Below are positions 3,916 through 33,776 of a DNA stretch of 64,000 nucleotides, in pieces. The position numbers were made by a program, and so were the translations under genes. Positions within the stretch are counted from its first letter, which is position 1; each line of letters begins with the position of its first letter. Source of the stretch: Stegostoma tigrinum (Eukaryota); NCBI RefSeq assembly GCF_030684315.1, contig NC_081356.1, positions 132,978,933 through 133,042,932 of the forward strand, in the 5' to 3' direction. Below the pieces are notes generated by a model that was not told the origin of the DNA, searched no databases, and saw nothing but the letters and a program-made list of their open reading frames with translations.

Positions 3916-3976
3916 ATGAGGTCTCTCTATGTCTGCCTTTCTGCAGTCCTCCTGTCGGTGTCGGTGCGGTGTCACA
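3916..3976 (+). CDS. Signal-peptide exon of a Siglec-15-like multi-V Ig receptor (MRSLYVCLSAVLLSVSVRCH+A)
   Basis: ATG at 3916 in ACAATGA context, 20 codons with a hydrophobic core, ends phase 1 at a canonical GTAAGT donor (3977); frame-compatible with the V exon at 10186. Confidence 0.8.
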
Positions 3977-4869
3977 GTAAGTACTTTCTAATACCTATCT
4001 TTCATATCTATTTTGTTATTTGATGCCTCCCCCTTGATGATCCACCTGTTATCTGGCATTTAGCGCCCAAACTTGTTGCTGTTTAGCATGATGTGCCTTC
4101 TCCTTCACCGTGGTCTCTTCATCAGAGAGAAATCATTTGCTTTACAAAAAACTGAAGTTACGGTAACATTGTGTACCTGAAGGTGACATAGCATTCCCAT
4201 TAGTTCTCCAACTGGGGCAGGAACCATAGAAACTCATATGATGTCCCGGAGAGTGAGGGGAGATGCAGAATACTGCAGACACAACCAAGCTTTAGAGAGA
4301 TGCTGGGGCAAAGCTGACTGAGAACAATGATGAGAATAAAGGGATTTGCCTTAATATCTTACGAAGAAAACTGCAAATGCAGAAAACCGAAAGCCAAATT
4401 TTGCTACTTGATGTAAACAATTCCTGCTGTTGACTGACCATTCAGATTTATTGAAGGACGTGAAGTGGCAACATTGAAGACACAAACTGAACGCAGCAAA
4501 ACAAGTTACATCTTATCTATTTCATCTTCAATACTCTTTTATCAACATGATGACTATTAATTAGTCAGTCAACAAATTCCTTCAAATTCTCTTTATAGGT
4601 TCATGGACTCTTTGACATATACAACTGGAAGGAGACCATTTGGGTCATCATGCCTAAGTCAGTCAACAAAGCTCTGATAATACTTCTCCCTTATTGTAGC
4701 TCTTGGTCCATATGCCTTTTTACCAACTTATTGAGCGCTTTAAGTCAATTGTTGGTGTAGGTTTGGGGGTGGGAGGTAGTGTTCAATTGGAAGGAAGTTT
4801 AAAAAATCAAAAAGAAATGAGAGACCAGAAGTGCAGGCTATTGAAGAAGAAAATGGGAACTTAAATGAA

Positions 4870-7056
4870 TGCCTAAATACTGCTTAAATATTACTTGCAT
4901 TTCTACTGAAGCATCCTTTCAGGCAGTGAGTGCCAGACTCCCATCAGCCTCTTTTGAAAAAAGTATCTCCTCAACTCTCCTCTTATTCTCTATCTCCGAA
5001 CTTAAATCTGTTTTCCCTGGTTCCTTAATTAATTTTAAAGGCCCTCTTACTTCATGTTTGAATAGCAATTTAAATGAAGCTAACTGAGTTGATTCATTTG
5101 GGGCATCTCGAATAGCAAAAAACAAATAAATGGGATATCATTACCCCAATCGTTTAGCTAATTCTGGAAATAATTGTATACTTGGAATAGACACTCTTTC
5201 AATCACTCCCACTTTCACTTCCCCAGTTTTCACTGGTCTTTCCAACCTGATCTCACAGGGAACGCTAAATCTCTCTCCATTTATTCCACAGAATACCACT
5301 CTTTCAAATAACATTTCAGGAGTGCAAATATTTTCATCTATTACTATTAGAAACTGGCTAGTTCCAGTATCTCTCAATATTTTAATTTCTTTACCTACTC
5401 CCTCCGTTCTTTCTGAGTAAAACTTACCCTCAGAGGCGAAGTCTTTGTCGGATTGGACACCATCTCACTGTCAATCCTGTGACTGGGTTCTTGCACTTTC
5501 CTGCAGCTCCTCAAATTCTTTTCAGATTTCCTTCACTGCCTCAACTATTCCCACTGGCCTAGCCTCTTTTACCACAAGGCTTTCCCCAGTGCCTTTCTTA
5601 AACCACTGGCACTGTGACTTTATTTGACCCAGTCCATTACAGTGAAAACACCTGACACTTTTCACCTCCTTTTTACTCTCTTGGGTTTCTTTTATCATGT
5701 GTGGCAAACTGCTCACAGTGTGCTCCTGAGATGCTGCTTGGCCTGCTGTGTTCATCCAGCCTCACATTTTATTATCTTGCTCACAGTGTAATCTACTTTT
5801 TGTTTTTTAATGAAAGGTATCCTTTGTTCCCAATTTCTATCCCTCATGGAATAAAATTGTTGTCGGAAGCTAAATTTCAATTTATGCGCTAATGTGCATT
5901 CATTTGCCATCTCTGCTCACTGTTGGAAATTTTTGTTCGTCAGTATGATTTCTTATCATTGCTTAAAATGAGTTTAGAACTCCTCCGGCAGAATAATCCC
6001 TCTAAGGTCCTCGTATGTCTTTACTTTCTTTAATGATCTCATCCATCTATCAAAATTGTTACGTTTAATTCTTTCAAACTTGACGTAAGTGTGACCTGGT
6101 TCCTTTCTTATATTTCTGAACTGTTGTTTACATACTTCTGGTACCAATTTTTAGGCACTCAAAGTAGGCTGTTTCACTCCTTCAAAGTCTACTGACACAC
6201 CTCCCCTGACAGCACTGCAAACATCCCAATAGCCCTGCCTACCAACTTAACATTCCCCACACAGTCTCTGGCCAATTCATCTGCCCAGCCAATTTCTCAA
6301 AGGAAATAAAATAAGGATTCCACATCATTTTGATTAAATTTTGGTAATGTATGGACATATTTGTATATACCTCTAACACCTTGTTGGCTTCGATGAGTTT
6401 GCTCATCCTCACTTCTGTCTTGTACTTTTCCTTCCATCATTTGAAGTCTTTTTGCTTCAAGTCCCAAATTCATCTTTTCCAAAGCAAACATTTTTTCCCT
6501 TTCTTATTTCTCTTTTTCCCATTTTCTCTTCCTCTTTCTTTACCCCTCTCTTCTCTCTCTCTTTCCTTCTGTTCTTCCTCTACTTGTAACCATAATTTAA
6601 ACTGTTTCAATTCCCTTTCATTCTCTAACTCCAGGTTTCTTGTTTTAAATTTCATTTTTTTCCAGCTCCCCTGCACTTTCCTGCTTCTCTGGTATACTTA
6701 AATGCTTGACTAGCTCCTTTATAATTTCAGCTTTCCTATTGTCCCTAGTTAAACCCAAATCTAGACTGTTTGCTAATTCTAAAAGTATATCATTCTTCTG
6801 TTTTTCTTCATATTCTTGCCAAATTTGGGAAGCATCTTTAAATCCCAAGACCACTTTAGCAATGTTCGTGCCATTTCCCTCACTTTTGCTTTAACCAACC
6901 ACTAGTAACTGAAATTAAACAGACTCTTCTCACCTAAGTTTTATTTAAAGATCAAGGACATTACTCCCTAAGTCAATTTAAATCTGTCCAAATTCAATCA
7001 GATCAATTCAGATCCCATACTCGAATCAGCTAGATCGCAGACTTAAGCCCCCAAAC
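4870..7056 (-). mobile_element. Decayed Gypsy (Gmr1-like) LTR retrotransposon internal region: gag with CCHC knuckle + protease
   Basis: Minus-strand fragments VRCFHCNGLGQIKSQC (degenerate zinc knuckle), LRDTGTSQ (aspartic protease motif), coiled-coil and LPKF..DVE..F gag; PBS-like TGGGGGCT next to the LTR; frameshifts. Confidence 0.8.
5722..5777 (+). mobile_element. Minimal PLE family-1 tail inserted in the Gypsy gag
   Basis: TSD TGCTCACAGTGT (5710-5721/5778-5789); sequence matches the other PLE-1 tails. Confidence 0.85.
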
Positions 7057-7803
7057 TGTTACAGAGGAGGGGAGATTAAATGAAAGCAACTGTCTGATAT
7101 TCTTTAACTATCAAGTAACAATTTATTTATTTAACCTTAACACTGAACAAATTAACACAATTACTAACAACCTGAAAAATGCCCCCTTTACTATGAACTC
7201 TTCTCTAGCTGACCTAAATTCTCCTGGTATACTGTTCCAATAAACACAAGTCCCATTAATATAAACCTAAATAATAAGAAAATAAATTAAAATACAGTCT
7301 TTCCAGGCCTACACACCTTTCTTCTGGTATTCTCAAATCATAAATGCCTTTCTCCCACTGATCCGCCTATCAAGGGTGTTTTCAGGTGGCAGTTCACTCA
7401 CACAAATTTTCAAAAGCCCTCTCCTCATATACCTTGGATGATGTGTCGACTTATTTACAGCTGCAATGGTCTGACGTTGTTGAAACCATTAGATTTAAAT
7501 TCAATTGGTTTTCAATTGCTAAGTGCTTGGTTTAAATTAATTGGCTGATTCCAGCTCATTGCAAAAACATCAAAACAATCCTAAGGTTTACAACCACACA
7601 GCCAACTGATAAATTTCAATTTCAGAACTGTCTGTATGTGTTCAGATGCTTACAAACATATTTTTATTGAAATCTCCAAGCATAGAAAAGCACTTCCCTG
7701 ATTCAAGGAACCACACACTCTTCTCCTTTATCATTCTTTTCACAAAAAATAATTCTAGCTTCCTACTTTTCAATTCACGTTGACCCGACACAACTTTGTA
7801 ACA
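7057..7803 (-). mobile_element. 5' LTR of the Gypsy relic
   Basis: Termini TGTTACA...TGTAACA (7-bp inverted repeat) abutting the PBS-like sequence. Confidence 0.7.
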
Positions 7804-9705: not shown

Positions 9706-10185
9706 ACATCAGTTCTCCTTCCTTATTTCTCTCTGTATCCCCCTAACTGCTGTACCTCCCAGGCATATCCCATCCCATTCCTGTGACTGATGAATGAGCC
9801 AGTCTGCTGAAGGCTGGCTTGGTAATACAACTGAAAGAGATGAGAAATAGAAAAGATGCCGCAGGGAGGGCGCTGAGTTCTGATTTTCAGATAACTCTGG
9901 GTGCCCTAGATTAATGGAGAGTTCAAAAAACTCTCAGGCACCAAAAACTTTCTTCAATCTGCTGCAAGAAATACCCACAGTCAAACCTCAGATATTTACA
10001 TACCACCTGATGCCCTCTGTTGTACTCCAGTGTGTAGCTCATTCCACACTCTCTCAGATCTGTTCAGAAACCACAATTATATGATGTCATATTTTTCTCA
10101 CAATATACTAGATTCAGTGTTTTACTCACGTTTGGTGCCTGTACTGTGTTCATGTCCTCTCTCTCTCTCTCTTTCCACCTCACAG

Positions 10186-10569
10186 CGGATTCTGCGAATG
10201 GTTGGTCAATGACAGTTGCGAATGATGTGAGGGCTGACGAAGGAAGAACCGCTGTCTTACCCTGCAATTTCACGCACCCAGACACAAATCTCACACTCAC
10301 TGGTTTCGTGATATGGAAAAAGGCACAAACAAATGTTATCTTTAACTGTACATATTTTGGCCCAGGCCATTCTCAGGGTGAGCAGTGTGAGAATATGATA
10401 AAGCACGATGGTGGAATGAGAGTCAGATTTGTGGGGAACATCAGCAACAATGATGTCTCAATAATGCTGGAGGGGCTGAGCCAGAAGGATGTTGGTCTCT
10501 ACTGGTGTCACGTGGAACTCAATATCGGCAGTTTCCACACAACATCTGGAACATATCTGGAAGTGAACG
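10186..10569 (+). CDS. Ig V-set exon VA1, Siglec-15-like (His at the conserved Arg position)
   Basis: Polypyrimidine tract + CACAG acceptor, GTGAGG donor, 384 nt phase 1/1; WSMTV..EGRTAVLPCNFTHP, IW, extra Cys pair IFNC..EQC, RFVGNISNNDVSI, DVGLYWCHVE. Confidence 0.93.
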
Positions 10570-11299
10570 GTGAGGAACAATGCTCAGATGGTATTGCTGC
10601 ACTATTAGCTCAATGGGGACAGGCTCCACCTGGTCCTGGATCTCTCAGGTTGGCTCCTTGTCCTGGGCATTTTTAGTTGACCTGAGGCAGGATGCAGTGA
10701 GAGTGATGAGGCTGGAATTTATAGTTCATTCCATAACCATGTCTGAAACATCCCCTAATCTCACGCACACTTATTTCCCGCGTACAAATTAACTTCAGTG
10801 CTCTGGGGTAGGGAACAGAGAAATCATCACAGAGAATCCAAGCTCCAAGATCCCCACCAGTGAGAATCCTGCTCTAGCAGCATTCGTTGAGGAAAAGAGA
10901 GACCTGGTATCTCCTGATCCCTCAGTGCATGACCATATATCAAGGTGAAGGAACCTGCAGATTGCATTGGCTGCGAATCTCACTGTTGCCATCTCCCCTC
11001 TCTCTTCGCTGAGGAGAAGATGGGAGCAGCTGCCTTCTGCAAAAAAATTAATCTACTTGTGAATGGTTTCAATCCTAGCAGTTTGTGGCATTTGAATTTT
11101 TAAAAAATCCAGGACTGAAAGCTAGTTGCATACTGACCATGTAACCATCACCGTAAAAGAAAAAAAAAATCTGGATCACTCATGTTCTTAAGGGACGTAA
11201 GCCTGCGATCCTTACCTGGCCAGATCTGCATGTGATTCCATACCCAGAGTAATGTGGTTGATCCTTAACTGCCCTCTGAATGGTTCACTCAGTTCTGGT

Positions 11300-12960
11300 C
11301 AAGGAAGGAACCTCAGAGTTCAAATGCAACTGTGGCTACAAGAGCAGGTTACAGGCTAGGAATCCTGTAAATTAACATATCTCTTGATGCCAAAGCCTAA
11401 TGAACAGACAGGAGTGCAATGGAATACTCCCTACTTGCCTGGAAGAATGCAGGAAAATCTATTGCTGGTCTGTCACTGTCAATAGGTCAAAACTCCCACC
11501 TAATACCTTTGTGGGTATAATAATAGCTACAAAATACACTGCAGTAAGTCACCAACACTTCCTCCACCAGCACCTTCCAAATTAGTGACATCTATGACAT
11601 GGTGAAAAACAGCAGCAGATACACACCATCCTGACTTGGAATTATATTTATCTTTTAATTATTTAAAGGGATGTGGGTGTCACATGCTAAATCAGCCTTT
11701 ATTGGACATCTCCAATTGCCCTAGAGAAAGGAATGATGAACTGCCCTCTTGAACTGCTGCATTCCCTCAGGTGCAAGGACACTCATGATGCAGCTGGCAA
11801 AGGAGCTCTAGACCTTTGTCCCACTGACACTGAAAGAATGGTGAAATATTTCCAAATCAGGATGGTGAGTGTCTTGAAGGGGAGCTTCTCCTGCTTCCCA
11901 TATGCATCAATGAACACCCATCCACAGTTCTGACCTTGTAGTGAAGGGAAGGTCATTGATGAAGCAGCTGAAAATAGTCGGGCCTTGAATACTACACTGA
12001 GGGACTCCTGCAGAGATGTCCCGGAGCTGAGATGAGTGACCTCCAGAAACCACAACCATCTTTCTGTGTGCCAGGTATGACTCAAGCCAACAGAAGATTC
12101 TTTCCTGATTCCCACTGGCTTAGTTTTTGTCAGGTCCTTTGAACCTACACCTGATCAAATGCAGCTTTGATGTTAAGGGCAGTCACTCACACTTTCTAAC
12201 ACTTTATTGATGATTGAGAGTGTACTGATGTGGCAGCAATTGGCTTGCTCAGACTCACATTGCTTTTTGTGCACAGGACATACCTGTGCAATATTCCCCA
12301 TTGTTGGGGTGATGCCAGTGTTGTAACTGAACGAAAACAGCTGGTGCAACAATTGTCTTCCACAATATAACAGGACTGTAGAGCTATTGGATACATTGGT
12401 AATGGAATGGATTTGTTGTGTGCTGTTGCTGCTATTTGACAAGCATATAGTCCTGGAGGTTGTAGTTTCAGCTTGTTGGTATCACATTTTTAGGTATGCC
12501 TGGCATTGCTCACAGCATACTCACATGTACAGTTCATTGATCCCCCAGCCTGGATTGGGGGTTAACCTGAATTGTGAGGTTATAGATTGTGTTCAGTAGG
12601 CTTGCAATGTCATCTTTAAGTTGGAGACTTCATGCTGGGGATTCCCAGGGCAACGTCTTCCCAACTGTATGCCACTGTGCCTCAGTCTCTGCCAGGACTG
12701 TCCTGCCAGCAAGGCAGGACATATCCAGGAATTGTGACCGTAACGCTTGAGACAGTGTGAGTTATGATTCTATGAGTCTGACCACGTGAGGCTGTTGGTT
12801 GACCAGTCTGTGAGTCAGCTCTTCCATGTTTTGAACAGCCTTCCACATGTTAATAAGGAGGATGTTAATGAGGAAGACTTTGCAGGGTTGACACGGCTGC
12901 GTATGCTCTCATGATTTTTGGTGTCTCAGTCAATGTGCAATAGTCTGGTTCCATTCTTAG
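11300..12960. mobile_element. Old non-LTR LINE fragments (CR1/L2 group), mostly minus strand; related pieces at ~22170-23270
   Basis: Degenerate RT motif AQVCPVHKKQ...ISTLSIINKVLE; 3' tail resembles the SacSINE1-like SINE tail. Confidence 0.55.
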
Positions 12961-13701
12961 TATATTGTCATTCATTCAGTATTGCTGGGTCAAACTCCTG
13001 GAGCTCCATTCCTAAAATTACTGTGGTTGGCCCTTATACCTCAGGGGTTTAGTAATTCAAAAAGGCAGCATCTCCTCAGCAATCAGGATGAATAACAAAT
13101 GCACATAATCTGAGCCAGCAACAGCCTTGACCTCATTTAAAAAATTACAGGAGAAATTACTTAAACATGGAGATTCTGGGAAAACTTGACGAGGCAGATT
13201 CTGAGAGGATATTTGCTCTTGTGAGCAAAAATGAACTGGCTTGAAAGTAAGGGGTTTCCTGTTTCAAGGTCACAGGTTAGAACTAGATAATTGTAACATT
13301 AGGAATGACGCAAGGTGGTTCTCCTTCACACAGAGTAGACTGAATAATTTGAGTGAGGTTTCTGGAAAGCATGATGGGAGAAAGATGTAAAATTCCTGAA
13401 CTTATTTAAAGAATGTTAACTTTGAGAAATGGATGGAGAATCCTGCATGAATAAATTCCAGAGCATTCAATGGATTTCCTGATCTTTTAAGTATCTTATG
13501 ATCAAGGTTCTCAAATTGAGAGATGGAGAGACAATTTGATCAGGGTGACTCTTGTAGTGGAGTATCTGGGAGACACCCATGAGGAACATGAGGGAGTTTA
13601 TAGTTCCCCGTTTTATTGTGAATTTGAAAGGAATATAAAAAATTGAATCAAGAACTTCTGCTCACTGACCTCATCCATTCTGATGTTTGCCCTTTCCCCA
13701 G

Positions 13702-14052
13702 CTGGCCAGGGAGAACTTCCAGTGGTGACTGGGTCAGAGGGAGATTCAGTTACTTTACCCTGTATCTTCAGGACCATGGACGGCCTCACACTCAGGAGCA
13801 TTACCTGGATGAGAAAGCAGCCCTATCAACGCATCATTACATTTACAGCCCAACCACAAGGAAATTGGACAACTCTAAATGATGGAAATCGGTACAAACT
13901 CATCGGGAACCCAAAGAAGGGAAACGCATCGACCACGATAAGCCAGCTGAGTATGAGGGACAATCACACTTACCTTTGTGTGGTCACATACACATTACAA
14001 GAAACAATTCTGTGTCTGATCCAGAAAGAGAGTCGGGTGCATGTCATACCTG
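13702..14052 (+). CDS. Ig V-set exon VB1
   Basis: CCCCAG acceptor, GTAAGA donor, 351 nt phase 1/1; EGDSVTLPC, ITWMR, RYKLIGNPKKGNAST, DNHTYLCVV; B-F Cys spacing of V-set type. Confidence 0.92.
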
Positions 14053-14355
14053 GTAAGAAGTCATTCACATTCTTCAGTCTGTAGAGGGTGTACAGTGAGA
14101 ATGGAACAGATTCTGTGGACTTTTTGTGACTTGGTTTTCCAGTGAAAGGTCATTGTTCTAAAACATTAACCCTGTTTCTCTCCACAGGTGTTGTCTGGCC
14201 TGCTGACTATTTGTATAATTTTGATTTCTTTTCCAAATTTCCAGCATCTGCAATATTTTGCTTTTGTGTTGCAAATTCAATTTTTAACGTATTTTAATGT
14301 AATTTGATGTGGTGATTGTTTTAGCTGCATTCTGATATCGGTATTGAAAAACATT

Positions 14356-14898
14356 ATGTGGAGATGCTGGTTGGACTGAGATGGACACACACATGGGCAC
14401 ACACACATATAAATCTATGGGTGAATTTGCTTTTGTAGATTTGTAATTGCAGATCCGTTCTATTTGGTTCAAACAACGCACAGTCAATGTAGCATTTTAT
14501 AAATTCCTACTTTGGAAATAAAACTAGTCTGACCCCAACTTAAACAGATCCTAAACAAGACTTCAACCTAAAATGCATTATCTGACCTGAAATGTCACCT
14601 CTAGTATACGCATAAAACCTTTAGTTATCTCAGGGCAGTGACTTGAAATAAATTCTGTGATTTGCATATTAATCACTTGAAATCTGCATCTCCTTTCTAA
14701 CTGATTAAAGATTTAACCACCATCTTAGGTTTGATAATTAAATTTACATCAGTTTATGACCCTTTGGTCTTTTGTTTCTAAATTCTGTGCCAGATGCCAC
14801 TTCTCTCACTAACACCAGAAGAAGGAGTGAGACTCCAAAAGCTTGTGTTTTCAAATAAAATTGCTGGACTATAACCTGGTGATATGTGATTTTTGACC
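14356..14898 (+). mobile_element. PLE family-3 3' fragment with degenerate HHR
   Basis: TSD TTGAAA(A/G)ACATT (14344-14355/14899-14910); empty site in the paralogous intron at ~31656; CAC-CAGAAGA-AGGAG..CTCC-AAAAGCTT-GTG at 14813-14847. Confidence 0.7.
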
Positions 14899-15999
14899 TT
14901 GAAAGACATTCACAAACTCAGAACATTCAATTCAATCTCCAAATGACCGCAATTTATACAGACATTGTGATCATACCCTTGAGCAGAAAGGTGTCACAGT
15001 CGAATGTGTCCTTCCTGGTTTCAATGCAGGTGTTCACACCTTAATCAGGAATAGGCCCAGCATGCAAATACATTCCCCCTGTCCATCTGACTGTGGTGAA
15101 GCATCATAGCCCTGTGGAACCTATCCTAGCCCTGCATTCATACATGGATTATAAACAGATGTGACGATATGCTGCTAGTGCCACTAGGTAACTAATCCAG
15201 GCACCCAAGTTTGGGGCCATGGTATGGCCACTTTGTTGAGATATGGAAAAGCCTTTAAGGGAATCTGTGGTTCAGTTTAACCCAGTTTCTAGACATCAGG
15301 GTAGAATTAGTGTGAAACCTACATTGTGGTTTCAATCTCCACTCCAGTTCAGGTTACCATGAAGCATTCACTTTCTCAATTTCTCGCTTCGCCTGATGTG
15401 TGGTAGCCCTCAGGTTAAATCACCACCAGTTGGCTTTCTCTATTGAGACAGAAGCCGATGGTCTGCTAAGAATATTGTGACTTGAATTAGAGAACAAATC
15501 TACCACCCACACTCACATCCATGCATTGCCATATGCACAATCTCGACCGTTCTCTCTCCATCCGCACCACCTCATGCAGGCTCAGAGTTGCTTATAATAC
15601 ATTAACCCTACACGGTTGAATTCTGCCTCAATGTTGGCAAGACAAAACACTGGCTAGTTGGTCGCTTTCCAAAACACCTCTGTTCTGTTCATAAAAATGA
15701 CCCTGAGGCTCCTGTTGCCTGCCACTTTAAGATATCACCGTGTTCCCTCAACAACATTTCTGTCTCAGGTTTGTTGCTGAAGCTGGAAGCTGTAAGAACA
15801 ACATCTCATTTTCTGCTTGGGGACCTGCAGCCTCCTATCTCTTTCCCCCACACTCACAGAGCAGACCTTGACATCACATGGGCTGCTACCACACACAATC
15901 CATTCCCAGCCACTAATGGTCCCCATGAGCAGCAGTTCATTTTCCTAGGCTGACCTTTACCCATTTGTTAATCTTCTCAACTATTTTTCTCTCCTTAAG

Positions 16000-17551: not shown

Positions 17552-17664
17552 CTATTTTTCTCTCCTTCAGATCTTCATCTCCACTGAGTGTTTACTCCCC
17601 TCTCTTCCCTCTGCCCCACCTTTGTCAGTTATACCAACCTTTTCCCAGCTATAATCAGTTATAG

Positions 17665-20760: not shown

Positions 20761-20769
20761 GCCTGGGCT

Positions 20770-21551: not shown

Positions 21552-21665
21552 ATAATAGGAACTGCAGATGCTGGAGAATCCAAGATAACAAGGTGTGGAA
21601 CTACATGAACACTACGTGAACCAAGCAGCATCATAGGAGCAGGAGCCTAGACCCTTCATCAGCTG
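21552..21665 (-). mobile_element. PLE family-1 tail (partly deleted HHR)
   Basis: Reverse complement of CTGATGAAGGGTCTAGG...CCAGCATCTGCAGTTCC(T)ATTATC. Confidence 0.8.
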
Positions 21666-23269: not shown

Positions 23270-24597
23270 GAATTAATCATGAGATTTATTTAGTTTCAAG
23301 CAACAATTTGATTGGAGATAGTCAGCATTGGTTCGTCAAGGGCAGGTCGTGTCTCACAAACCTCATTGAGTTTTTTGAGAAGGAGACCAAGCATGTGGAT
23401 GAGGGAAGGGTAGTTGATGTGGTGTATATGGACGTCAGTAAAGCCTTTGATAAGGTTCCACATGGTAAGCTATTGGAGAAAATACAGAGGCACGGGATTG
23501 ACGGAGATTTAGCAGTTTGGATTAGAGACTGGCTTTCTGCAAGAAAGCAACGAGTGGTGGTTGATGGAAAATATTCAGCCTGGAGTCCGGTTACTAGTGG
23601 TGTGCCTCAAGGATCTGTTTTGGGACCACTGCTGTTTGTCATTTTTATAAATGATTTGGACGCAGGCATTGGTGGATGGGTTAGTAAGTTTGCAGATGAC
23701 ACTAAAGTCGGTGGAGTGGTGGACAGTGTGGAAGAATGTTGCAGGTTGCAGGGAGACTTGGATAAACTGCAGAATTGGGCCGAAAGGTGGCAAATGGAGT
23801 TCAATATGGATAAATGTGAGGTGATTCACTTTGGGAGGAATAATAGGAAGGTAGAATACCAGGTCAATGGAAAAATTCTTGGTAGTGTGGATGTGCAGAG
23901 GGATCTTGGTGTCCATGTACATAGATCCCTGAAAGTTGCCACCCAGGTTGATAGTGCTGTTAAAGCGGCTTACGGTGTGTTAGGTTTTATTGGTAGAGGG
24001 ATTGAGTTCCGGAGCCGTGATGCCATGATGCAACTGTACAAAATGCTAGTGCGGCCTCACTTGGAATATTGCATGCAGTTCTGCTCGCCCCATTACAGGA
24101 AGGATGTGGAAGCATTGGAAAAGGTGCAGAGGAGATTTACCAGGATGTTGCCTGGTCTGGAGCGCAGGCCCTATGAATAAAAGGCTGAGGGACTTGGGTC
24201 TGTTCTCATTGGAGAGAAGGAGGCTAAGAGGGGATTTAATAGAGACATACAAGATGATCAGAGGATTAGATAGGGTGGACAGAGAGAGTCTTTTTCCGAG
24301 GATGATGACTTCAGCTTGTACAAGGGGGCATAGCTACAAATTGAGGGGTGATAGATTTAAGACAGGCGTCAGAGGCAGGTTCTTTACTCAGAGAGTGGTA
24401 AGGGCGTGGGACGCCCTGCCTGCCAATGTAGTTAACTCAGCCACATTAGGGGCATTTAAACAGTCCCTGGATAAGCATATGGATAACGATGGGATAGTGT
24501 AGGGGGAGGAGCTTAGATTAGTTCATAGGTCGGCGCAACATCGAGGGCCGAAGGGCCTGTTCTGTGCTGTATTGTTCCATGTTCTATGTTCTATGTT
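23270..24597 (+). mobile_element. Young 5'-truncated CR1 LINE (RT domain nearly intact)
   Basis: ORFs 23194-24180/24104-24502 with KAFDKVPH, GVPQGSVLGP, FADD; (TTCTATG)n tail. Confidence 0.95.
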
Positions 24598-24946
24598 ATG
24601 TCTGACCTGATGCCAATTTGATTTCTTGATAAGTCTCAATACATTTCAAGTTGAGATAATTCTGAAACTGTTACAATGCTATATATGCCAAGAGATCCTG
24701 AAAATGGAAAACATTTGGAGTATACAGACAGAGAGCACCCATCTCTTCCTCTACCCTGTTGAGCAAAGATCTAAGTTCATCTGATTGACCATTGAATTTG
24801 AAGGATGACCAACACTGTGCAGAAAACAACATCTCATCACTGCAAAAAAAAAATACAAGAACAGTGAGAGAGAAAGATCTTTCCATCTTGTGATTGGGGC
24901 TTTGATTTTTCTATATTCTTTTTTCACTCAAGGTCGAAGTATAAAC

Positions 24947-25127
24947 NNNNNNNNNNNNNNNNNNNNNNNNNNNNNNNNNNNNNNNNNNNNNNNNNNNNNN
25001 NNNNNNNNNNNNNNNNNNNNNNNNNNNNNNNNNNNNNNNNNNNNNNNNNNNNNNNNNNNNNNNNNNNNNNNNNNNNNNNNNNNNNNNNNNNNNNNNNNNN
25101 NNNNNNNNNNNNNNNNNNNNNNNNNNN
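24947..25127. other. Assembly gap (181 N)
   Basis: Run of N between the VA1-VB1 and VA2-VB2 units. Confidence 1.
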
Positions 25128-25795
25128 GTGTGTTTGAAGGCGTCCAGTTTGTATTATGAATTGATTGATGGAATTACTTTAACTGAAGAATGCTGGTACG
25201 GTTCCCTCCAATCCTGAGTCGCAATCTGTCAGGCAATTTGGGTGTTGGTGATCTCATTGGGATTCTAGTGCAGTTGCACATTTCCTAACAGTGTGTGGGG
25301 GGCAGTAGGACATGGCTATTGACACAGTCATGACATTCATTTTATGCATTCATTCATTTTATGTTTGTGCAACTGATTGTCTCCCTTGGCCATTTCTGAG
25401 GGCATTCTACAGTCAAATCTGTTGCTGTGGGACTGGAGTCACACGTAGGCCAGACCTGTAAGGACGGCATTCACCATCTCTAAAGAACACCAGTGAATCA
25501 GATGGCTTTTTTCCAAAAATTGGTCATGATTTTATGGCTAACGTTAGACCAGTGTATAATTTCAGATGAAATAACTGAATTGAAATTCCAGCAGCTGCCA
25601 TTGTGGGAAGTGAGACTCTGATCCTGGCGTATTGGATTGCTCATGAATTGACAATACTGTTAGTTCACTGCCTCACATTGTAACTGCTAACCCTGTTTCC
25701 ACTAAATAAGAGACTTAGATCAGAATATCTCAGTTTCATAACTGAGGCAGTGTTGTGTTCATATCTTCTCTCTTTCTCTGGCTCTTCCCTTATAG

Positions 25796-26179
25796 CGGCT
25801 TCTGATGATGGATGGTCAATGACAGTCGCGAATGGTGTGAGGGCAGAGGAAGGAAGAACCGCTGTCTTACCCTGCAGCTTCACCCATCCAGACACTAATC
25901 TCACGCTCACTGGCTCTGTGAAATGGATTAAATCTGACACAGGTGTAATCTTTAACTGTGCATATCCTGGTCTAGATCATTCCCAGGGTGAGCTATGTGA
26001 GAATGTGAGACAGCAGGATGATGGGAATCGATTCAGATTTGTGGGGAACCTCAGCAATAATGATGTCTCAATAATGATGGATGGACTGAGACAGGAAGAT
26101 GCTGGTTCCTATCTGTGTCGTGTGGAGCTCAATATCGGCAGTTTTCAAACACGGTCTCCAACGAATCTGGAAGTAGAAG
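25796..26179 (+). CDS. Ig V-set exon VA2, Siglec-15-like (retains YLCRVE Arg)
   Basis: TATAG acceptor, GTGAGG donor, 384 nt phase 1/1; colinear with VA1 (about 70% aa identity by hand count); four Cys as in VA1. Confidence 0.93.
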
Positions 26180-26327
26180 GTGAGGAACAATGTTCAGAAT
26201 TTGTCTGTTCCCTGACAGCTCAATGGGGATGGACTCCATCTAGCCCAAGATCTCTTGGATTGGTTCCTTGACCTGGGTTCTTTCATTCAGTCTGAGGCAC
26301 AAGGCAGTGAGAAGGAGATGGTGGGAG

Positions 26328-26340
26328 AGACAGACAGAGA

Positions 26341-26391
<51 letters not shown>

Positions 26392-26410
26392 CGAGAGAGA
26401 GAGAGAGAGA
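26328..26410. repeat. (GA)n microsatellite in the VA2 intron, absent from the paralogous VA1 intron
   Basis: Direct observation; flanks align with 10700-10725. Confidence 0.95.
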
Positions 26411-26729
26411 AGGCAGGGATTTATAGACCAATCCATCACCATCTCTGAAACCTCTCACAGACCTTCACGCACTCACTCATTTGCCATGTCCAGACTGGCT
26501 TCAGTGTTTTGCAGTAGGAAACACAGAAACCAAGGACCCAAATTCCAAGATCCTCGCTGGCTTCATGCTCACTTTAGGCAATACACCATCAACGTATCTA
26601 GAAAAAGGAAGTTGATGGTCTTTATGCATTGGTTTTTGAAGATGTCAGGGCATATTTAGAGAGTGATTGGGAAAGCAAATGGGATTCACAGTCTTCAGAA
26701 TTGGAGGTGCTGAGAACTGAGGGAGCTAG

Positions 26730-28200
26730 GCTATTCTAGAAGGCCATTCAGTCCACTAAGTCTGTTCCACCTTTCAATAAGATCATGGCTGTGAAGATAA
26801 ACCCCATCACAATCTGAGATTATGCCCTCTGTTCTGAAGCTCTCCCAGAAGGGGAAACAACCATTCTGCTTCCTCCTTGGAAGACACCCAAAAAATCTTT
26901 TCTGTTTCAGTAAGGCCACCTCTCATTCTTCTGTATTGTAACAAGAACAGGCTCAATCTTCTCAAACTCGACTCATAAGACAGCCCCTCCACACTTGCCA
27001 TCAAATTAGTTAACCTTCTATGAACTGCCCCCAATGCCAGTTTAAGTATCCTTTGATATGGGACCAAAACTATTCACAGTCTTCTAGCTGTGAGTTAACT
27101 TGTGCCTGGCAAAACTTCACTAATTTTATTTTTGAGTCCCTTTGAAAGAGAGGCCAACATTCAGATAGCCTTCCCTCCTACCTGCTGAGATTGGATGTTT
27201 TTTTGATTCATGAAATTTCTAAATCCCTCTGTTCTATAACTTTCTGCAGCCTTTCTCTTTTTCAATAATATTCAGCTCTTCTATTCTTCCTACCAAAACG
27301 CATAACCTTACATTTTCCACAAGATTTTCCATGTGCCAATTTTTTGCCCTAGCAAAGATCCCTGTGGCAATCCATTTGTTACAGGTCGCTGGCCTGAAAT
27401 CAATGCCCTTATCCCAGCTGTCTGTTTTCTATGAACTAGCCAATCCTCTAACCAAGCTGGTACACTGACACCAGCACCACAGAATCTAATCTTTTTCAGG
27501 AGCTTAATGTATTGCATCTTGTGAAACATCTTCTGAAAATCCAAATATGACATGCACTGATTCCCCTTTATCTATTCAGCTTATTACCACCTCAAAGTAT
27601 TCAAGTAAATTAGTCAAGCAAAATTTCCCCTTCATGAAGACATGCTGACTCTGCTTGACCATATTATCTTTTTCTACATGCTCAATGGTTCCATCCTTAA
27701 CAATTGATGCCAACAGTTTTACAATGACAGACATTAACTTAAATGTGAATGGTTACCTTTTTTTATTATTACCTTTCCCATCAAAACAGAGGTTTTACAT
27801 TAACAGATTTCTAAATGTCTCAGACCTTCACAGAATCAAAAGATTCCAGGAGATTCGTACCTATGCATCCATTATCTCTATGGCCACTTTCTTAATATCT
27901 CAGAATGCATGCCAGCAGTTCCAGGGGTCTACCTGGCCTTTAACTCCATTAGTTTCCCTTGCACTTTTTCTCTCGTTATAGTTATTGTATTTATTTCGTG
28001 ACCTTTTGCCCCTTGAATATGTATTAATAATTTGGGATGCTATTAGCGTCTACTACTGTGAAAACTGCCTGTTGAGAGTTCCCTATTATTATTCCCAGCC
28101 TTATCCTCTGAGAGTCCTATGTTCACTTAGCTTCTTTCTTCCTTTTTATTGAATTAAAGAAGCTGTTTAGCTCGCCACTTTATTACATGCAAGTTTACTC
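26730..28200 (-). mobile_element. Old CR1 LINE
   Basis: YLDFQK, NGLPQGSLLG, RRMRGGLTET fragments. Confidence 0.75.
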
Positions 28201-28869
28201 ATGTAGAGCTAGCAGGGACCAAATCAACAGAATTACCTCCTTTTTGTCAAGCCAACAATTGCACTGGCTGGGTACAAGACAGGTCGAACACCTCCAATCC
28301 CTTATTGGAGGAACACTTTATGGAACTTCAGGTCTTGTTAGCTGAGAATATGTGAAGAGCCATCTCCCTGACTCCCCTTGGCTGGGAATTTCAGAGTGTT
28401 GCTAGCTGCCAATCCTGATTAGTTAAGAGTCAGAGGAGGGTTCCTCATTGCTGAAGATTGAGATATGACATCATTGAAACTTGCAAGATCCTGAGAGGTC
28501 TTGACGGAATAGATGGTGAGAGGATGTGAGAGAAAATGGAAATCACTTCAAGCTAGAATGGAGGTGAAGAGTGTTTCCCAATTTCAGAGGATGATTAATT
28601 TTTAAAGATGGTGCAGAATGGGCTAATTCCTTGCTCGCTTCCCCAACACCCGAAGCAGTGGTCGGTGCTGCAGGAAATCTTAATCTTTAATAGACCTCAA
28701 TCAAACTGTGTTCATGGCACAGGTCACAGTTTGGAGTTAGTGAAGGGTTACATTCACGCTAATATTAGGAATGTTCCCCTTCATGTAGTTGTGTATTCAA
28801 TCATTGGAGTGGATTTCTGGGCAGATTGAAGGAGCGCAGGGTGGAGTGTAGGGCTGGGGAATGAAAAGC

Positions 28870-29636
28870 AGACATGTTTTCTAAACAGTGAGAAAATTCA
28901 TAAGCTGAGATGCAAAGGGATCTGGGAGCGCTAGTCCAGGATTCTCTAAAGGTTAACTTGCAGGTTGAGACCATGATTAAGAAAGCGAATGTAATGTTGT
29001 CACTGATCTCAAGAGGGTTGGAATATAAAACCAGCGATGTGCCTTTGAGAATTTATAAAGCTCTAGTTAGGCCCCATTTAGAATACTGTGTCCAATTTTG
29101 GGCCCCACACCTCAGGAAGGACATACTGGTGCTGGAGCGTGTCCAGCGGAGATTCACATGGATGATCCCTGGAATGGTAGGCCTGACATACGATGAATGG
29201 CTGAGGATCCTGGGATTGTACTCATTAGAGTTTAGAAGTTTGAGGGGAGACCCAATAGAAACTTACAAGATAATGCATGGCTTAGAAAGGGTGGATGCTG
29301 GGAAGTTGTTTCTGTTAGGTAGGGAGACTAGGACCTGTGGGCACAGCCTTAGAATTCGAGGGGGTAAATTTAAAATGGAAATGAGGAGACATTTCCTCAG
29401 CCAGAGAGTGGTGGGCCTGTGGAATTCATTGCCACGGAGTGCAGTAAAAGCCGGGACGTTAAATGCCTTCAAGGCAGATATTGATGATTTCTTGCTCCCG
29501 CAAGGAATTAAGGGCTATGGGGAGAGTGCGGGTAAGTGGAATTGAAATGCCCATCAGCCATGATTAAATGGTGGAGTGGGCTCGATGGGCCGAGTGGCCT
29601 TACTTCCACTCCTATGTCTTATGGTCTTATAGTCTT
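28870..29636 (+). mobile_element. Young CR1 3' fragment
   Basis: ORF 28910-29545 (LVRPHLEYCVQFWAP); (TCTTATGG)n tail; same subfamily as 34067-35680. Confidence 0.93.
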
Positions 29637-29913
29637 ATATTTAGCGAAGGTGGGAGGTCAATTGAGCTCTGATTCAGCGTATTTTCTGCCCCGTATGTAT
29701 CTCATGGCTGATTGAATCAAAACGGGGAGAGGAAGGGATTTTCATCAGGGTGAGTATTGTAGGAGTACATAACAGACTGGTCTAGACCCCTGGGAAAAAT
29801 GAGTTGGGTATTTAATTATTCATTTGGTTGTGAAGTTGAAAGAAATGTAACAAATTAAATTGAGAACTTCTGCACACTGAACTCATCCATTCTGTTGTTT
29901 GTCCTTTACTCAG

Positions 29914-30261
29914 CTTCTAAGGGAAATGTCTCAGTGGTGACTGGGACAGAAGGAGATTCAGTTACTTTACCCTGTATCTTCAGGACCTGGGACTCCCACA
30001 CCCTGACCACTGTTACCTGGATGAGGAAAGAACCCTACCAACACATTGTAACATTTACAGCTCAGTCACAGGGAAATTGGACAATTGTAAATGATGGAAA
30101 TCGGTATGAACTCATTGGGAACCCAGAGGAGGGAAATGCCTCGACCAGGATAAATCAGCTGAGTGTGAATGACAATCACACTTTCCTGTGTCTTGTTGAA
30201 TACACATCAGATCCTAATTTTCAGTATCTGATCCAGAGAGAGACTCGGCTGCGCGTATATG
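29914..30261 (+). CDS. Ig V-set exon VB2
   Basis: CTCAG acceptor, GTAAGA donor, 348 nt phase 1/1; paralog of VB1 (EGDSVTLPCIFRT, VTWMRK, GNRYELIGNPEEGNAS, DNHTFLC). Confidence 0.92.
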
Positions 30262-30280
30262 GTAAGAAATCATTATATAG

Positions 30281-30629
30281 AGGAGGAATTGCTAATGGTA
30301 TTATCATTGGACCGTTAATCCAGAGACCCAGGTAATGTTCTGGGAACCAGGTTTCGAATCCCACCACGGCAGATGGTGGAATTTTAAATCAATAAAATTC
30401 TCAAAGTAAGAGTTTAAAGATGACTATATGACCACTGTTGAAAGTTGTAACAACCCACCTGGTTCACTAATGTCCTTTAGAGAAGCAAACTGCCATTCTA
30501 ACCTGGACTGGCCTATATGTGACTTCAGACCCATAGTGATGTGGTTGATTCTTAACTATTAGGGATGGGGAGAAAGTGCTGGCCAAGCTGACGACACCCT
30601 AATCCTGTACCTGAGTGAATATTAAAAAG
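30281..30629 (+). mobile_element. SacSINE1-like DeuSINE inserted ~20 bp downstream of the VB2 donor
   Basis: tRNA-like head (GGTTTCGAATCCCACC), Deu-like core CTGGTTCACTAATGTCCTTTAG..GGCCTATATGTGACTTCAGACCCA, A-rich tail; absent after VB1. Confidence 0.8.
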
Positions 30630-30714
30630 CCTTCAGTCTGGAGAGGATGTACAGTGAGAGTGGGACAGATTCTGGGAACTTTTGATGATTCAATTTTCCA
30701 GTGAAAGGTCATTG

Positions 30715-31470
30715 AACGACAGTTCGGGCAAATCAGGGCATGATATGTATATTTAACGGTAAGGTCCTGGAGAGCGTTTGCAAACCAAGAGACCTTAGAG
30801 TGCAGGTTCATAGTTCCTTGAGTCACGGGTAGACAGGGTAGTGTAGAAGGCATTTAGTAGCCTTTATTGGGCTGTGTATTGGGTATAGCAGTTAAGAGGT
30901 CATGTTGCACCACACAGGACATTGCTTTGGCCACTTTGGTATACTGCGTGTGGTTCTGGTCTCACTGCTCTCACAAATATATTGTAAAATTTAAAAGTGT
31001 TCAGAAAAGATTTACAAGCATGTTTCCAGGTTTGGAGCATTGAGTTACAGGGAGAGGCCAAATAGGCTGGGGCTATTTTCCCTGGAGCAACGGAAGTTTA
31101 CAAAATAATGAGAGGCATAGATATGGAAAATATTCAAGATTTTTTCTCCGGGTTAAGAGAGTCCAAAACTAGAGGGCACAGGTTTAAGGTGAGTGGGGAA
31201 AGATTTAGAAGTGACCTAAGGGGCAATGTGTTCTTGCAGATGATGGATTGTGTATGGAATGAACTGCCAGCGTAAGTTGCGGAGGCTGGTATAATTACAA
31301 CATTTAAAAGGTCTCTGGATGCGTATATAATTAGGAAAGGTTTAGATGGATATGGCCCAAATTCTGGAAAATGGGACTAGATTAATTTAGAATATCTGGT
31401 TGGCATGGAAAAGTTGGACTGAAAGGTCTGTTTTCATGCTGCACATTTCTATGACTCTATAACACTATAA
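30715..31470 (+). mobile_element. Old CR1 3' fragment
   Basis: Degenerate CR1 C-terminal coding sequence and (CTCTATGA)-like tail; absent in the VB1 intron. Confidence 0.75.
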
Positions 31471-31685
31471 CTAAAATGTTAACCCTTGTTTCTTTCCATA
31501 GGTGTTGTCTGGCCTGCTGAGTGTTTGCAGCATTTTGATGTTTATTTCAAATTTCCAGCATCAGCAGTATTTTGGTTTTGTTTCAAATTTGATTTTTTAA
31601 AATATTTGATATAATTTGATGTGCTCATCCTTTTGGCTGCATTCTGATGTTAGTGTTGAAAGTCATTCACACACTCAGAAAATTG

Positions 31686-31798
31686 TCTAGGCCCGAAACG
31701 TCAGCTTTTGTGCTCCTGAGATGCTGCTTGGCCTGCTGTGTTCATCCAGACTCACATTTTATTATCTTGGAATCTCCAGCATCTGCAGTTCCCATTAT
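31686..31798 (+). mobile_element. PLE family-1 tail, 5'-truncated inside HHR helix II
   Basis: Begins TCTAGGCCCGAAACGTCAG; TSD CTCAGAA(A/C)ATT; empty site at ~14917. Confidence 0.85.
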
Positions 31799-32657
31799 CT
31801 CAGAACATTCAGTTCAGTTTCCAAAAAACCCAAAGTAATACTGACATTGAGTTCACCTTCTCCAGCAGAAAGGTTCAACAGTCTAGAGTGTCCCTTTTGG
31901 TTCCAATGAAAGTGTTCACACCTTCATCAGTAATAGCTCCATCAGTGCAAGTATATTCCCCCAGTGTCCATCTGCCTGTGTGAGGCATCACAGCCATGTG
32001 GGACCTACCCCAGCCCCGCATTCACACATGAGTTTTAAAGGAAGTGGTGATATATAGCTATTGTCACTGGGTAAATAATCCAGACACCAAATTCTATAGA
32101 AATGAGTTCAAATCCCACCACAGGAGAAGGTGAAATTTTAAAGAAATGTTTTAAAAATCAGGAATGTAAATGAAGAGCTAATCTATTGGCCACATGTCAT
32201 CATTATTGTGTTGGTAAAGCCCATTTGATTCACTCGTGCCCTTTAGGGAATGAAATCTCCATCCTCACTGGACCTACCCTACTTGTGTGGTACAGGACAG
32301 GGTCGGATGGCACATTAGCTTTCAATAACAGTGTTCACTGTTTAGGGCCAGGGTGGCGGGTGTGGGCCCTCGCAGTTGTGTTGGGGTCTGGGCAAAGAAC
32401 AGCACAATGTACATTATTTTTGTCCCTAGCCCTGTCGACATCAATCCCACAGCAAGATGGTGGATTGCACACTGTAATGGCTGAGCAAAAGATTTCACCT
32501 GTATTGAAGCTGCTAAATGTCTAAGGTAAAAAATGAAATGAGACGGGCCATCAGATACTAACTGATACAACATAAACAGCATCTGCAAAAATCTCCCTGT
32601 TGCCCCTTGTTCAAACTTGCCACAGTTCTCCAGCAAGGCTTAGTGCAAGCTAGAATA

Positions 32658-32778
32658 TCTCTGATGAAGGGTCTAGGCCCGAAACGTCAGCTTTTGTGCT
32701 CCTGAGATGCTGCTGTGTTCATCCAGCCTCACATTTTATTATCTTGGAATTCTCCAGCATCTGCAGTTCCCATTATCT
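32658..32778 (+). mobile_element. PLE family-1 tail with intact HHR core
   Basis: TSD CTAGAATA (32650-32657/32779-32786). Confidence 0.9.
32659..32690 (+). ncRNA. Minimal type I hammerhead ribozyme motif (family 1)
   Basis: CT-CTGATGA-AGGGTCTAGGCCC-GAAA-CG-TC-AG: conserved boxes, GGG/CCC helix II, palindromic ACGT helix III, GUC site, CT/AG helix I. Confidence 0.8.
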
Positions 32779-33668
32779 CTAGAATAACAGCATCTCATTT
32801 TCCACTTGGCGACACTGCAGCCTTCAGAATTCAATATCACGTTCAGTAATTTTAGACCTGAATATCTTCTTCCATGTCTTTAGTCCCAAAACTACATGCC
32901 AAGCCCAGTCATTACATGAGCTGTTTTCACAGTTATTGTCCACCTTATCAGATTGGCTTTCTGCTACCAGTACCATTATCCATCCCTTTATTTGCCTAAC
33001 TGCCTTTCTCACCTTCTGGGCTCTGTCTCACTCATTTAGTACGCCCACCCCCATCCCCTGTAAACAGCCTAGTGACTGTCAGTTCTGTAGGAGGGTCACA
33101 GGACTCAAAATCTTATCCGTTTCCTGTCGTCAGATGCTGCCAGACCTCACTGAGTTTTTCCAGCAATTTCTGATTTTGTTTCCTTCATGACGACATCTGG
33201 GGTGCAGGAATCCTGAGGAGGAAGAACTTTTGCTAATTCTTCTCTTCCTCAATCTGGGGGAAGCTGGAGAAAATGCTGCTCTTACTGTTTCCCCAGCTAA
33301 GACCAGGTGAGTCAGCACCAGATCGATCCCGGAACTACCCTATGGAACGATTTAAAATATCCATCTAACCTTATACTCTGTGTCACAGAGTTAAGCAGCT
33401 GCCCACTTCAGGAATTGTTCCAATCTGCCTGAAAGAGCAGTGGAAACAGATTCAGTAGTGGGATCTTTCAGAAGACAAGCGTGTAAGTGTTTGGAAAGGA
33501 ACGAATTAAAGGGTTATATGGAAGGACAGGGGAGAGGGATGACCTGGATTACTCCATCAGAGAATGTCCAGTTTGTGCGTTTAATCTCATGCTGTTTAAC
33601 CCTGCTGTATGTTTCACTGCAGCAGCATTAAGATATGACTGACCAAAGTTGTTCTTGCTGTTTTGCAG

Positions 33669-33776
33669 CAAAGAGGACTGAGTCCAACACTGTATATCCG
33701 GTGGTCATCCCATTGCTCATCCTCTTGCTCATCATCATCATTATTGTCATCATCATCATCTTCAGAAAGAAAGGAG
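33669..33776 (+). CDS. Transmembrane exon (AKRTESNTVYPVVIPLLILLLIIIIIVIIIIFRKKG)
   Basis: TTTTGCAG acceptor, phase 1 in frame with VB2, about 21 hydrophobic residues followed by an RKK stop-transfer; GTGGGT donor at 33777 (read-through would stop at TGA 33785-33787). Confidence 0.85.

Follow-up and report, generated by a model that had tools for sequence, protein, structure and literature searches.

The window analyzed here is a 64,000-nucleotide (nt) stretch of the zebra shark (Stegostoma tigrinum) genome (contig NC_081356.1, forward-strand positions 132,978,933 to 133,042,932), and the gene examined within it, LOC132206012, encodes four V-set domains of the Siglec-15 type in tandem. Four long open stretches with immunoglobulin (Ig) features are found on the plus strand of the window and alternate between two domain types, designated VA and VB. 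An initial annotation, made from the letters of the sequence, had joined them with a leader and a transmembrane (TM) exon in the order leader-VA1-VB1-VA2-VB2-TM. Reading the splice borders directly off the window bore this out, as all six exons lie where they had been placed, all acceptors are AG, all donors are GT, and every exon of the leader-to-TM set is in phase 1 at both borders. The exons are given below, with the residues to which they correspond in P0183, an NCBI automatic model of 540 amino acids (aa) named "uncharacterized protein LOC132206012" from S. tigrinum.

3916 to 3976, plus strand: leader exon with ATG start, MRSLYVCLSAVLLSVSVRCH, phase 1 donor GTAAGT; P0183 residues 1 to 20
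10186 to 10569, plus strand: VA1 exon, V-set E 6.7e-10; P0183 residues 22 to 148
13702 to 14052, plus strand: VB1 exon, V-set E 3.7e-15; P0183 residues 150 to 265
25796 to 26179, plus strand: VA2 exon, V-set E 3e-12; P0183 residues 267 to 393
29914 to 30261, plus strand: VB2 exon, V-set E 9.3e-17; P0183 residues 395 to 509
33669 to 33776, plus strand: TM exon, uncharged helix and RKKGG stop-transfer sequence, phase 1 on both sides

The internal exons measure 384 (VA1), 351 (VB1), 384 (VA2), 348 (VB2), and 108 (TM) nt, all divisible by 3, and because all exons are in phase 1, splicing into leader-VA1-VB1-VA2-VB2 is possible. P0183 holds the leader, VA1, VB1, VA2, and VB2 blocks in this order at 100% identity, with the junction residues that phase 1 splicing predicts; as these five N-terminal blocks are identical to a public protein model, the exon set is not a product of chance. 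All four Ig exons exceeded the Pfam V-set cut-off of 26 bits and each scored best as V-set, which agrees with the earlier proposal that the second domain of the pair is also of V type and that the pair is doubled. The leader is of the MRSLY type and shares 89% identity with that of Heterodontus P0008. Translation of the TM exon gives VVIPLLILLLIIIIIVIIIIF, the helix of which is free of K, R, D, E, and H, in line with its description as uncharged, and which is similar to the TM of Hemiscyllium P0182/P0005. A C2-type exon was sought in the window by tblastn with five C2 stretches, and the best match reached only E 0.54. Searches and fold predictions, here and below, were made with single exons or with public proteins of other species (P0006, P0253, and P0264). 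We regard the identity and architecture of LOC132206012, as a four-V gene of a Siglec-15-derived family, as very likely to be correct.

The initial annotation had ended the gene at 33776. Coding sequence was found to continue past this point into a 40-nt exon and a last exon starting at 39706, and a further exon carrying a stop codon lies ahead of the TM exon:

32430 to 32524, plus strand: stop-bearing exon, ALSTSIPQQ...LLNV then TAA, chosen by the NCBI model in place of the TM exon
38529 to 38568, plus strand: cytoplasmic mini-exon of 40 nt, GFSQQIELTTFSRR, phase 1 to 2, AG/GT borders
39706 to 39815, plus strand: last coding exon, located by the tails of relatives, AG border

The stop-bearing exon has a good AG acceptor, and its TAA is followed by G/GTAAAA, placing a GT one base past the stop, while the poly(A) signals AATAAA and ATTAAA are absent for about 1 kb after the exon. 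As a GT follows the stop and there is no nearby poly(A) signal, the exon may be a stop-bearing cassette rather than a terminal exon and may act as a switch between soluble and membrane forms. A counterpart was sought downstream of VB1 and was not found. The mini-exon has a strong pyrimidine tract and was aligned by tblastn to P0005 (57% identity, E 2.2), a match that is weak taken alone and is backed by position and phase. When the mini-exon is included, the tail after RKKGG reads FSQQIELTTFSRR NDPGSSQD and ends at a stop at 39733. When the TM exon is spliced straight to the last exon, the frame, open to 39815, resembles the tail of P0005/P0182 (53% over 30 aa, E 6e-6). A tyrosine is found in neither reading of the last exon. 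Exons for an immunoreceptor tyrosine-based inhibitory motif (ITIM) were sought in the window by tblastn with the tails of seven relatives, and this returned nothing beyond the mini-exon and the last exon of the tyrosine-free P0005 type; the TM and tail of LOC132206012 match only the tyrosine-free P0182/P0005 type.

Just 5' of the last exon, an open stretch at 39473 to 39599 reads ...TVHYHLLKGNQDHSAKPITYE and carries VHYHLL, which is ITIM-like, and ITYE; an inhibitory tail may have left this stretch as a relic. A 76-nt exon at 39522 to 39597 has the right phase and was not adopted, because of its weak acceptor and because the mini-exon, which homology supports, would compete with it.

VA1 and VA2 share 70% identity and VB1 and VB2 about 65%, with about 30% between VA and VB. 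The motifs by which VA had been likened to the Siglec-15 V domain are present, namely, GWSMTV, AVLPCNFTHP/AVLPCSFTHP, IFNC...EQC/ELC, and RVRFVGN/RFRFVGN..NNDVS, together with the F-strand motif, which reads YWCHVE in VA1 and YLCRVE in VA2. In comparisons with solved structures, human Siglec-15 (7zoz_A) was the best match to the sequences of both VA2 (E 2.3e-11; CD33, 1e-8) and VB2 (E 6.4e-9; TIM-2, 1.1e-7). The AlphaFold model of VA2 (predicted local distance difference test [pLDDT] score, 85.2) also returned 7zoz_A first (E 2.8e-10), with Siglec V domains accounting for 9 of the 10 top matches. Siglec-15 is therefore the best relative of VA by sequence as well as by predicted fold. The VB2 model (pLDDT, 89.9) matched VSIG4 first, nectin-1 next, and Siglec-15 fourth. 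Assignment of VB to a Siglec fold was considered and set aside in favor of a generic V-set fold, as no Siglec besides Siglec-15 appeared within the top 50 of the VB2 fold search.

PMC10264397, on the structure of Siglec-15, gives as its hallmarks the C64-C142 disulfide and an unusual C95-C104 disulfide, and it describes a salt bridge from R143 on strand F to sialic acid, with W44, Y87, and Y154 as ligand contacts. In the 7zoz_A alignment, W44, C64, C95, C104, C142, and R143 align with identical residues in VA2. The position of R143 is occupied by Arg in VA2, His in VA1, Val in VB1, and Leu in VB2, and the extra Cys pair equivalent to C95-C104 is present in VA1 and VA2 and absent from VB. The structural cysteines of the membrane-distal pair are intact (four in VA1 and two in VB1). 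As the Trp, the Cys pair, and the Arg are all kept in VA2 and VA1 has His, VA2 would be the only domain able to form the canonical salt bridge to sialic acid.

Using HMMER in an exhaustive search with VA2, 418 representatives were found at E<=0.001, including 14 at E<=1e-30; the top matches came from sharks, rays, and lungfish, and most bore the name "uncharacterized." At E<=1e-10, a word-index search with Mustelus P0006 identified 86 clusters, every one of shark or ray origin, and the domains in the window are 50 to 82% identical to domains of this VA-VB family. The architecture is VA-VB in 67 of the 86 clusters, VA-VB-VA-VB in 5, VA only in 6, VB only in 4, and other orders in 4. When the same clusters were sorted by signaling type, 31 had an ITIM-type tail (typically VxYAAV at the C terminus), 23 a TM Lys with a short tail, and 9 an uncharged TM without ITIM (P0182 among them); the model contained no TM in 22, and 1 was of C2 type. 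Judged by sequence, this split between ITIM and TM Lys is the pattern of paired activating and inhibitory receptors. The doubled VA-VB architecture is represented by Stegostoma P0183, Hemiscyllium P0179 and P0182, Chiloscyllium P0180, and Narcine P0002, the third domain of which shows the same replacement of Arg by His as VA1 of the window. The tyrosine-free TM form has also been modeled in Hemiscyllium (P0182 and P0205). LOC132206012 has the features of the family, that is, a VA exon, a VB exon, phase 1 borders, and a TM directly after VB, and in having neither an ITIM tail nor a TM Lys it belongs to a minority type.

The NCBI labels given to genes of the family vary (Siglec-15, Siglec-12, pIgR-like, JAML-like, and uncharacterized). 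A full-text literature search, with subscription journals outside its scope, returned no published description of the family; a whale shark paper (PMC8455134) refers to Siglec gene families listed in its supplementary file 9. The earlier suggestion that the family is possibly uncharacterized therefore stands in that no describing paper was found and has to be narrowed in that the architecture is already present in NCBI automatic annotation as "uncharacterized protein." By architecture, the family can be described as Siglec-derived paired receptors made solely of V domains.

Siglec-15 proper was sought in cartilaginous fishes with C2-bearing proteins of sawfish and basking shark, and the matches were scored for architecture as the family had been. 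A second group of proteins was found, in which VA-VB is followed by about 100 residues (C2), a TM with Lys, and a tail of 4 to 9 residues (19 in the chimaera). The arrangement VA-VB-C2-TM(Lys) was scored in Heterodontus, Cetorhinus, Mustelus, Pristis, Leucoraja, Hypanus, Mobula, Rhinoraja, and the chimaera Callorhinchus, and the apparent chondrichthyan Siglec-15 proteins are P0263, P0264, P0267, P0256, P0260, P0262, P0051, P0259, and P0031 (Callorhinchus). Within the order of the zebra shark, Chiloscyllium P0302 and Rhincodon P0303 share 69 to 71% identity across the entire C2-type query, their architecture lying outside the scored set. No Stegostoma entry was present among the C2-type matches in this search, which was made over clusters at 90% identity. 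As cartilaginous fishes have separate VA-VB-C2-TM(Lys) Siglec-15 genes, the gene in the window is a paralog.

In gar, teleosts, frog, and birds, Siglec-15 is V-C2-TM(Lys) with a single V domain. The Siglec-15 of cartilaginous fishes, as far as these protein models show, itself has two V domains, and the premise of the initial annotation that Siglec-15 has a single one fails in this group, where VA-VB precedes C2. Because Siglec-15 there is already VA-VB, the V-V arrangement is the local norm, and LOC132206012 is special only in the doubling of the pair and the loss of C2. The conclusion of the initial annotation, of a lineage-specific modular family rather than the Siglec-15 ortholog, was upheld by the likeness of VA to Siglec-15 in sequence and predicted fold, the 86 shark and ray clusters, and the separate VA-VB-C2-TM(Lys) genes in clades of their own.

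Some teleost and turtle proteins named "Siglec-15" or "Siglec-15-like" (P0102, P0118, P0121, P0134, and P0136) combine V-C2 with a TM devoid of charge and a long tail, and three of these five carry ITIM-like motifs (e.g., ITYAEL and VCYAEV). Inhibitory versions of Siglec-15 are therefore also found outside cartilaginous fishes.

To place the domains, a tree of 73 V domains was built with IQ-TREE from 133 columns, which are few for the number of rows, and was rooted on two shark CD33-like V domains. Starred clades were obtained for the VA domains of the family (19 rows, 99/91), the VA domains of C2-type proteins (10 rows, 98/96), and the V domains of bony-vertebrate Siglec-15 (14 rows, 97/90). 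All VB domains form one starred clade (28 rows, 100/95) that divides into C2-type VB (98/95) and family VB (99/100). The branching order of the four big V groups is left unresolved by the tree. These clades place the origin of the VA-VB pair before the split between the family and chondrichthyan Siglec-15, that of the chimaera included.

Within the tree, VA1 and VA2 of the window are sisters (96/84), as are VB1 and VB2 (90/86, not starred), and the repeats group within species in Hemiscyllium and Narcine too. This grouping could reflect either repeated doubling or homogenization of an ancient doubling. A blastn comparison of the window with itself revealed two duplication units, found as collinear blocks of 77 to 86% identity:

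10145 to 15833, plus strand: duplication unit copy 1, comprising VA1 and VB1 and reaching about 1.8 kb into the intron that follows
25754 to 32823, plus strand: duplication unit copy 2, comprising VA2, VB2, and the downstream intron

The duplicated unit begins about 40 bases before the VA exon and extends about 1.8 to 2.5 kb beyond the VB exon. The ratio of nonsynonymous to synonymous substitution rates (dN/dS) between the copies is 0.35 for VA and 0.49 for VB, which indicates that both copies are constrained by purifying selection. In relative-rate tests, VB1 had 19 to 26 unique changes and VB2 had 3 to 6 (p<0.003 with five of five outgroups); the excess of VA1 over VA2 was weaker (p<0.05 with one of five outgroups). 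The fast evolution of VB1 could stem from relaxed or from diversifying selection on the membrane-distal pair.

Taken as a whole, LOC132206012 is probably a member of a Siglec-15-derived multigene family that has doubled its VA-VB pair internally and whose product would be a soluble or membrane-bound nonsignaling partner. By this account, the shark and ray family would descend from Siglec-15 with a VA-VB pair lacking C2 as its basic ectodomain, and an internal tandem duplication of about 6 to 7 kb would have doubled the VA-VB exon pair. Inclusion of the stop exon at 32430 would yield a secreted four-V protein; skipping of the exon would yield a type I membrane protein whose TM is uncharged and whose tail, of about 27 to 40 residues, lacks tyrosine. 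Neither product would be able to signal via an ITIM or a DAP12-type adaptor. The four-V product might then compete for or mask the ligands of ITIM-bearing and Lys-bearing relatives (as a decoy, a soluble competitor, or a molecule of adhesion/masking), a role proposed because it has neither an ITIM nor a TM charge. The functional part of this account, in which VA2 alone would bind in the canonical manner and the product would serve as a nonsignaling decoy, is tentative, and we hold it to be somewhat less probable than its opposite. The terms "glycan-sensing" and "immune," which the initial annotation had applied, are to be taken as putative labels for this gene. More doubtful still, and speculative, is the wider proposition that elasmobranchs stripped C2 from a two-V Siglec-15 and built their own paired-receptor system, with the Arg switched domain by domain and four-V decoys tuning their relatives.

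A number of findings count against the favored account. Human Siglec-15 Y87 has no counterpart in VA, as it falls in a deletion, and the VB2 fold search was generic, with VSIG4 first and Siglec-15 only fourth. The faster distal pair and the loss of the VA1 Arg also fit incipient decay, with which the last exon is likewise compatible, being shifted by one base relative to Hemiscyllium P0182, with the conserved tail (..GTGCT..SISDTVT) in a different frame. Both the VB1-VA2 junction and the choice between stop and TM exons rest on the Gnomon model and homology.

The alternative that survives best, although we consider it unlikely, is that the family abandoned glycan recognition and that its V domains bind protein or pathogen ligands, as do those of other fast-evolving paired receptors. 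The missing Y87 contact speaks for it, as do VB, in which the Arg is never found and the fold of which matches not just Siglec-15 but also VSIG4, nectin, and TIM, and the replacement of the Arg in 12 of 79 VA motifs. These F-strand motifs were collected from 87 family proteins, in 14 of which the pattern gave no motif, and have R (n = 67), H (n = 6), or another residue (n = 6) at the position in question. The same counts can be set against this alternative, as the Arg is kept in 67 of the 79 motifs; moreover, in an alignment of 39 single-VA and Siglec-15 sequences, 34 retain the Arg, 32 retain the Trp, and 38 retain each of the extra Cys residues. Such retention of the Arg, Trp, and Cys suggests selection on a sialic acid site.

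We consider it distinctly improbable that the gene is decaying or that no four-V protein is made, whether because transcripts with the stop exon are degraded or because the distal pair is skipped to give two-V isoforms. The GT after the stop exon of the NCBI model and the lack of a nearby poly(A) signal would be expected in that case, and the tail shifted in frame relative to P0182, the change of Arg to His in VA1, the fast-evolving VB1, and the VA-only and VB-only isoforms seen among relatives all point the same way. Against decay, all ten named exons are open and have AG/GT borders, the dN/dS values between the copies are those of constrained sequence, VA1 retains its four structural cysteines and VB1 both of its own, and the tyrosine-free TM form is also modeled in Hemiscyllium P0182 and P0205. 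The VA2 exon is contained in four sequencing runs, all of one study and representing no more than two samples. None is on record as RNA, and as contigs over 25500 to 30500 cross the exon-intron borders unbroken, the runs are of genomic DNA. The contigs bear out the letters of both membrane-proximal V exons, with no differences in the VA2 exon and a single T>C at 30212 in the VB2 exon, which was present in three runs of one sample and is synonymous (third codon position, GAT to GAC, both Asp).

The initial annotation had itself raised the case that the gap in the assembly hides a TM and a leader. The locus would then comprise two separate two-domain genes, with the gap concealing the TM and tail of VA1-VB1 and the leader of VA2-VB2.

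24947 to 25127: assembly gap of 181 N, the sole run of N in the window

The gap sits in the 11.7-kb VB1-VA2 intron, 10.9 kb past the VB1 donor and 669 bases ahead of the VA2 acceptor, and since it is intronic, the reading frame across it is irrelevant. Its flanks are noncoding and adjoin debris of long interspersed nuclear elements (LINEs) and a short repeat. That most of the family is VA-VB (67 of 86 clusters), that the gap separates the two pairs and has only an estimated length, and that the VB1-VA2 junction rests on a model, the reads being of genomic DNA, would all accommodate two genes. However, a 108-nt TM exon, a 61-nt leader exon, splice signals, a 3' end, and a promoter would exceed about 181 bases unless the estimate is badly off. 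Homologs of the leader or TM were sought in the read part of the intron and none was found, the best tblastn matches (E 0.067 and 0.33) being to unrelated stretches, with the same outcome in a sensitive blastn search. In keeping with this, the homology ahead of VA2 stops about 40 bases before the exon and includes no leader, and the copy 1 intron has no homolog of the TM. The NCBI model, moreover, joins VB1 to VA2 across the gap, and four-V models recur in three further species (Hemiscyllium, with two genes, Chiloscyllium, and Narcine). No homolog of either element thus lies in the read intron, the gap itself being unread, and the case is made unlikely, to the point that we would assign it very little weight. 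Least credible of all, with a probability close to nil, is that LOC132206012 is the zebra shark SIGLEC15 ortholog: Siglec-15 is the best match in PDB, but the window has no C2 exon, the TM has no lysine, and distinct C2-type genes exist in cartilaginous fishes, with relatives in the same order (Chiloscyllium P0302 and Rhincodon P0303), and fall in starred clades separate from the family for both V types (family VA, 99/91; family VB, 99/100).

The Siglec-15 of humans and other bony vertebrates is a V-C2-TM protein with a TM Lys that couples to DAP12/DAP10 (structure 7ZOZ). VA resembles the human protein in the WSM Trp (W44), the B-F disulfide, the C95-C104 disulfide, and the RFRxxGN..ND.S and YxCRVE motifs, the F-strand Arg (R143) being shared by VA2 only. 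LOC132206012 differs from human Siglec-15 in having four V domains, no C2, no TM lysine, a His in VA1, and no match to Y87, and in belonging to a separate clade. Its VA and VB types, and the order in which they follow each other, are those of chondrichthyan Siglec-15, with the VB domains of both in one starred clade (100/95), and the LC(I/L)IPL..K pattern of the chondrichthyan Siglec-15 TM is shared by the Lys-bearing members of the family; unlike chondrichthyan Siglec-15, LOC132206012 is without the C2 of about 100 residues and the TM Lys and has its V pair doubled.

At the level of the family, the likeness to CD33-related Siglecs, KIR, and LILR lies in closely related ectodomains that are joined to an ITIM tail in some members (31 of 86) and, in others, to a TM Lys followed by a short tail (23 of 86). 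The ectodomains of the family differ from these in being all V-set, and the gene in the window differs in having neither signaling device; the V domains of shark CD33-like Siglecs form a distant outgroup (branch, 0.92). With pIgR the gene shares tandem V-set domains, a type I membrane protein, and a possible soluble form, whereas its matches to pIgR are weaker and partial (VA2, E 3e-7 over about 35 residues; VB2, 2.8e-5). Two four-domain members of the family are called "pIgR-like" by NCBI. The skate MDIRs are presented in PMC3031540 as modular, multigene, activating and inhibitory receptors of the Ig superfamily in a cartilaginous fish. As described there, they resemble CD300, TREM, FCAR, and pIgR and not Siglec-15 (PMC3031540), which sets them apart from the present family; the MDIR name is carried by none of the 86 family clusters. 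Tandem Siglec-15-type V domains are also found in the lungfish Protopterus annectens, in P0001 (1,128 aa; seven V, C2, and TM) and P0277 (three V, C2, and TM-Lys). In contrast to the shark gene, C2 is retained in these proteins and their extra V domains are lungfish-specific duplicates within the bony-vertebrate Siglec-15 clade; the tree rules out the second lungfish V domain as an ortholog of VB. The multiplication of V domains in lungfish would thus be independent of the doubling in sharks.

Siglec-15 is regarded as the conserved, single-copy, V-C2 Siglec of vertebrates. Cartilaginous fishes appear to depart from this in a two-V ortholog, in a C2-less offshoot that runs to dozens of genes and comprises inhibitory, activating, and signal-less forms, and in a V pair that can be doubled within one gene. 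Should the proteins bind sialic acid, a Siglec-based paired-receptor system would have been invented independently of the mammalian CD33-related one, which is more than 400 million years removed from that of sharks, and the domains with and without the Arg would offer a natural series for studying how such systems evolve. The immediate gain is a corrected gene model, with TM and tail exons and a stop-bearing exon, and one description for genes that carry various NCBI labels.

The introns and the 3' flank of the gene are full of reverse transcriptase and LINE-like fragments on both strands (16000 to 24600, 26800 to 29600, 34000 to 35600, 44300 to 49600, and 53400 to 55700), amid which an open frame of 746 aa is found on the minus strand at 45031 to 47271. 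An element at about 28840 to 29670 reaches a depth of up to 10^5 in the DNA runs. Simple repeats comprise a (CA)n microsatellite at 3217 to 3472, ahead of the leader exon, and a (GA)n tract at 26255 to 26460 in the VA2-VB2 intron, at which the Logan contigs break (26317 to 26421).

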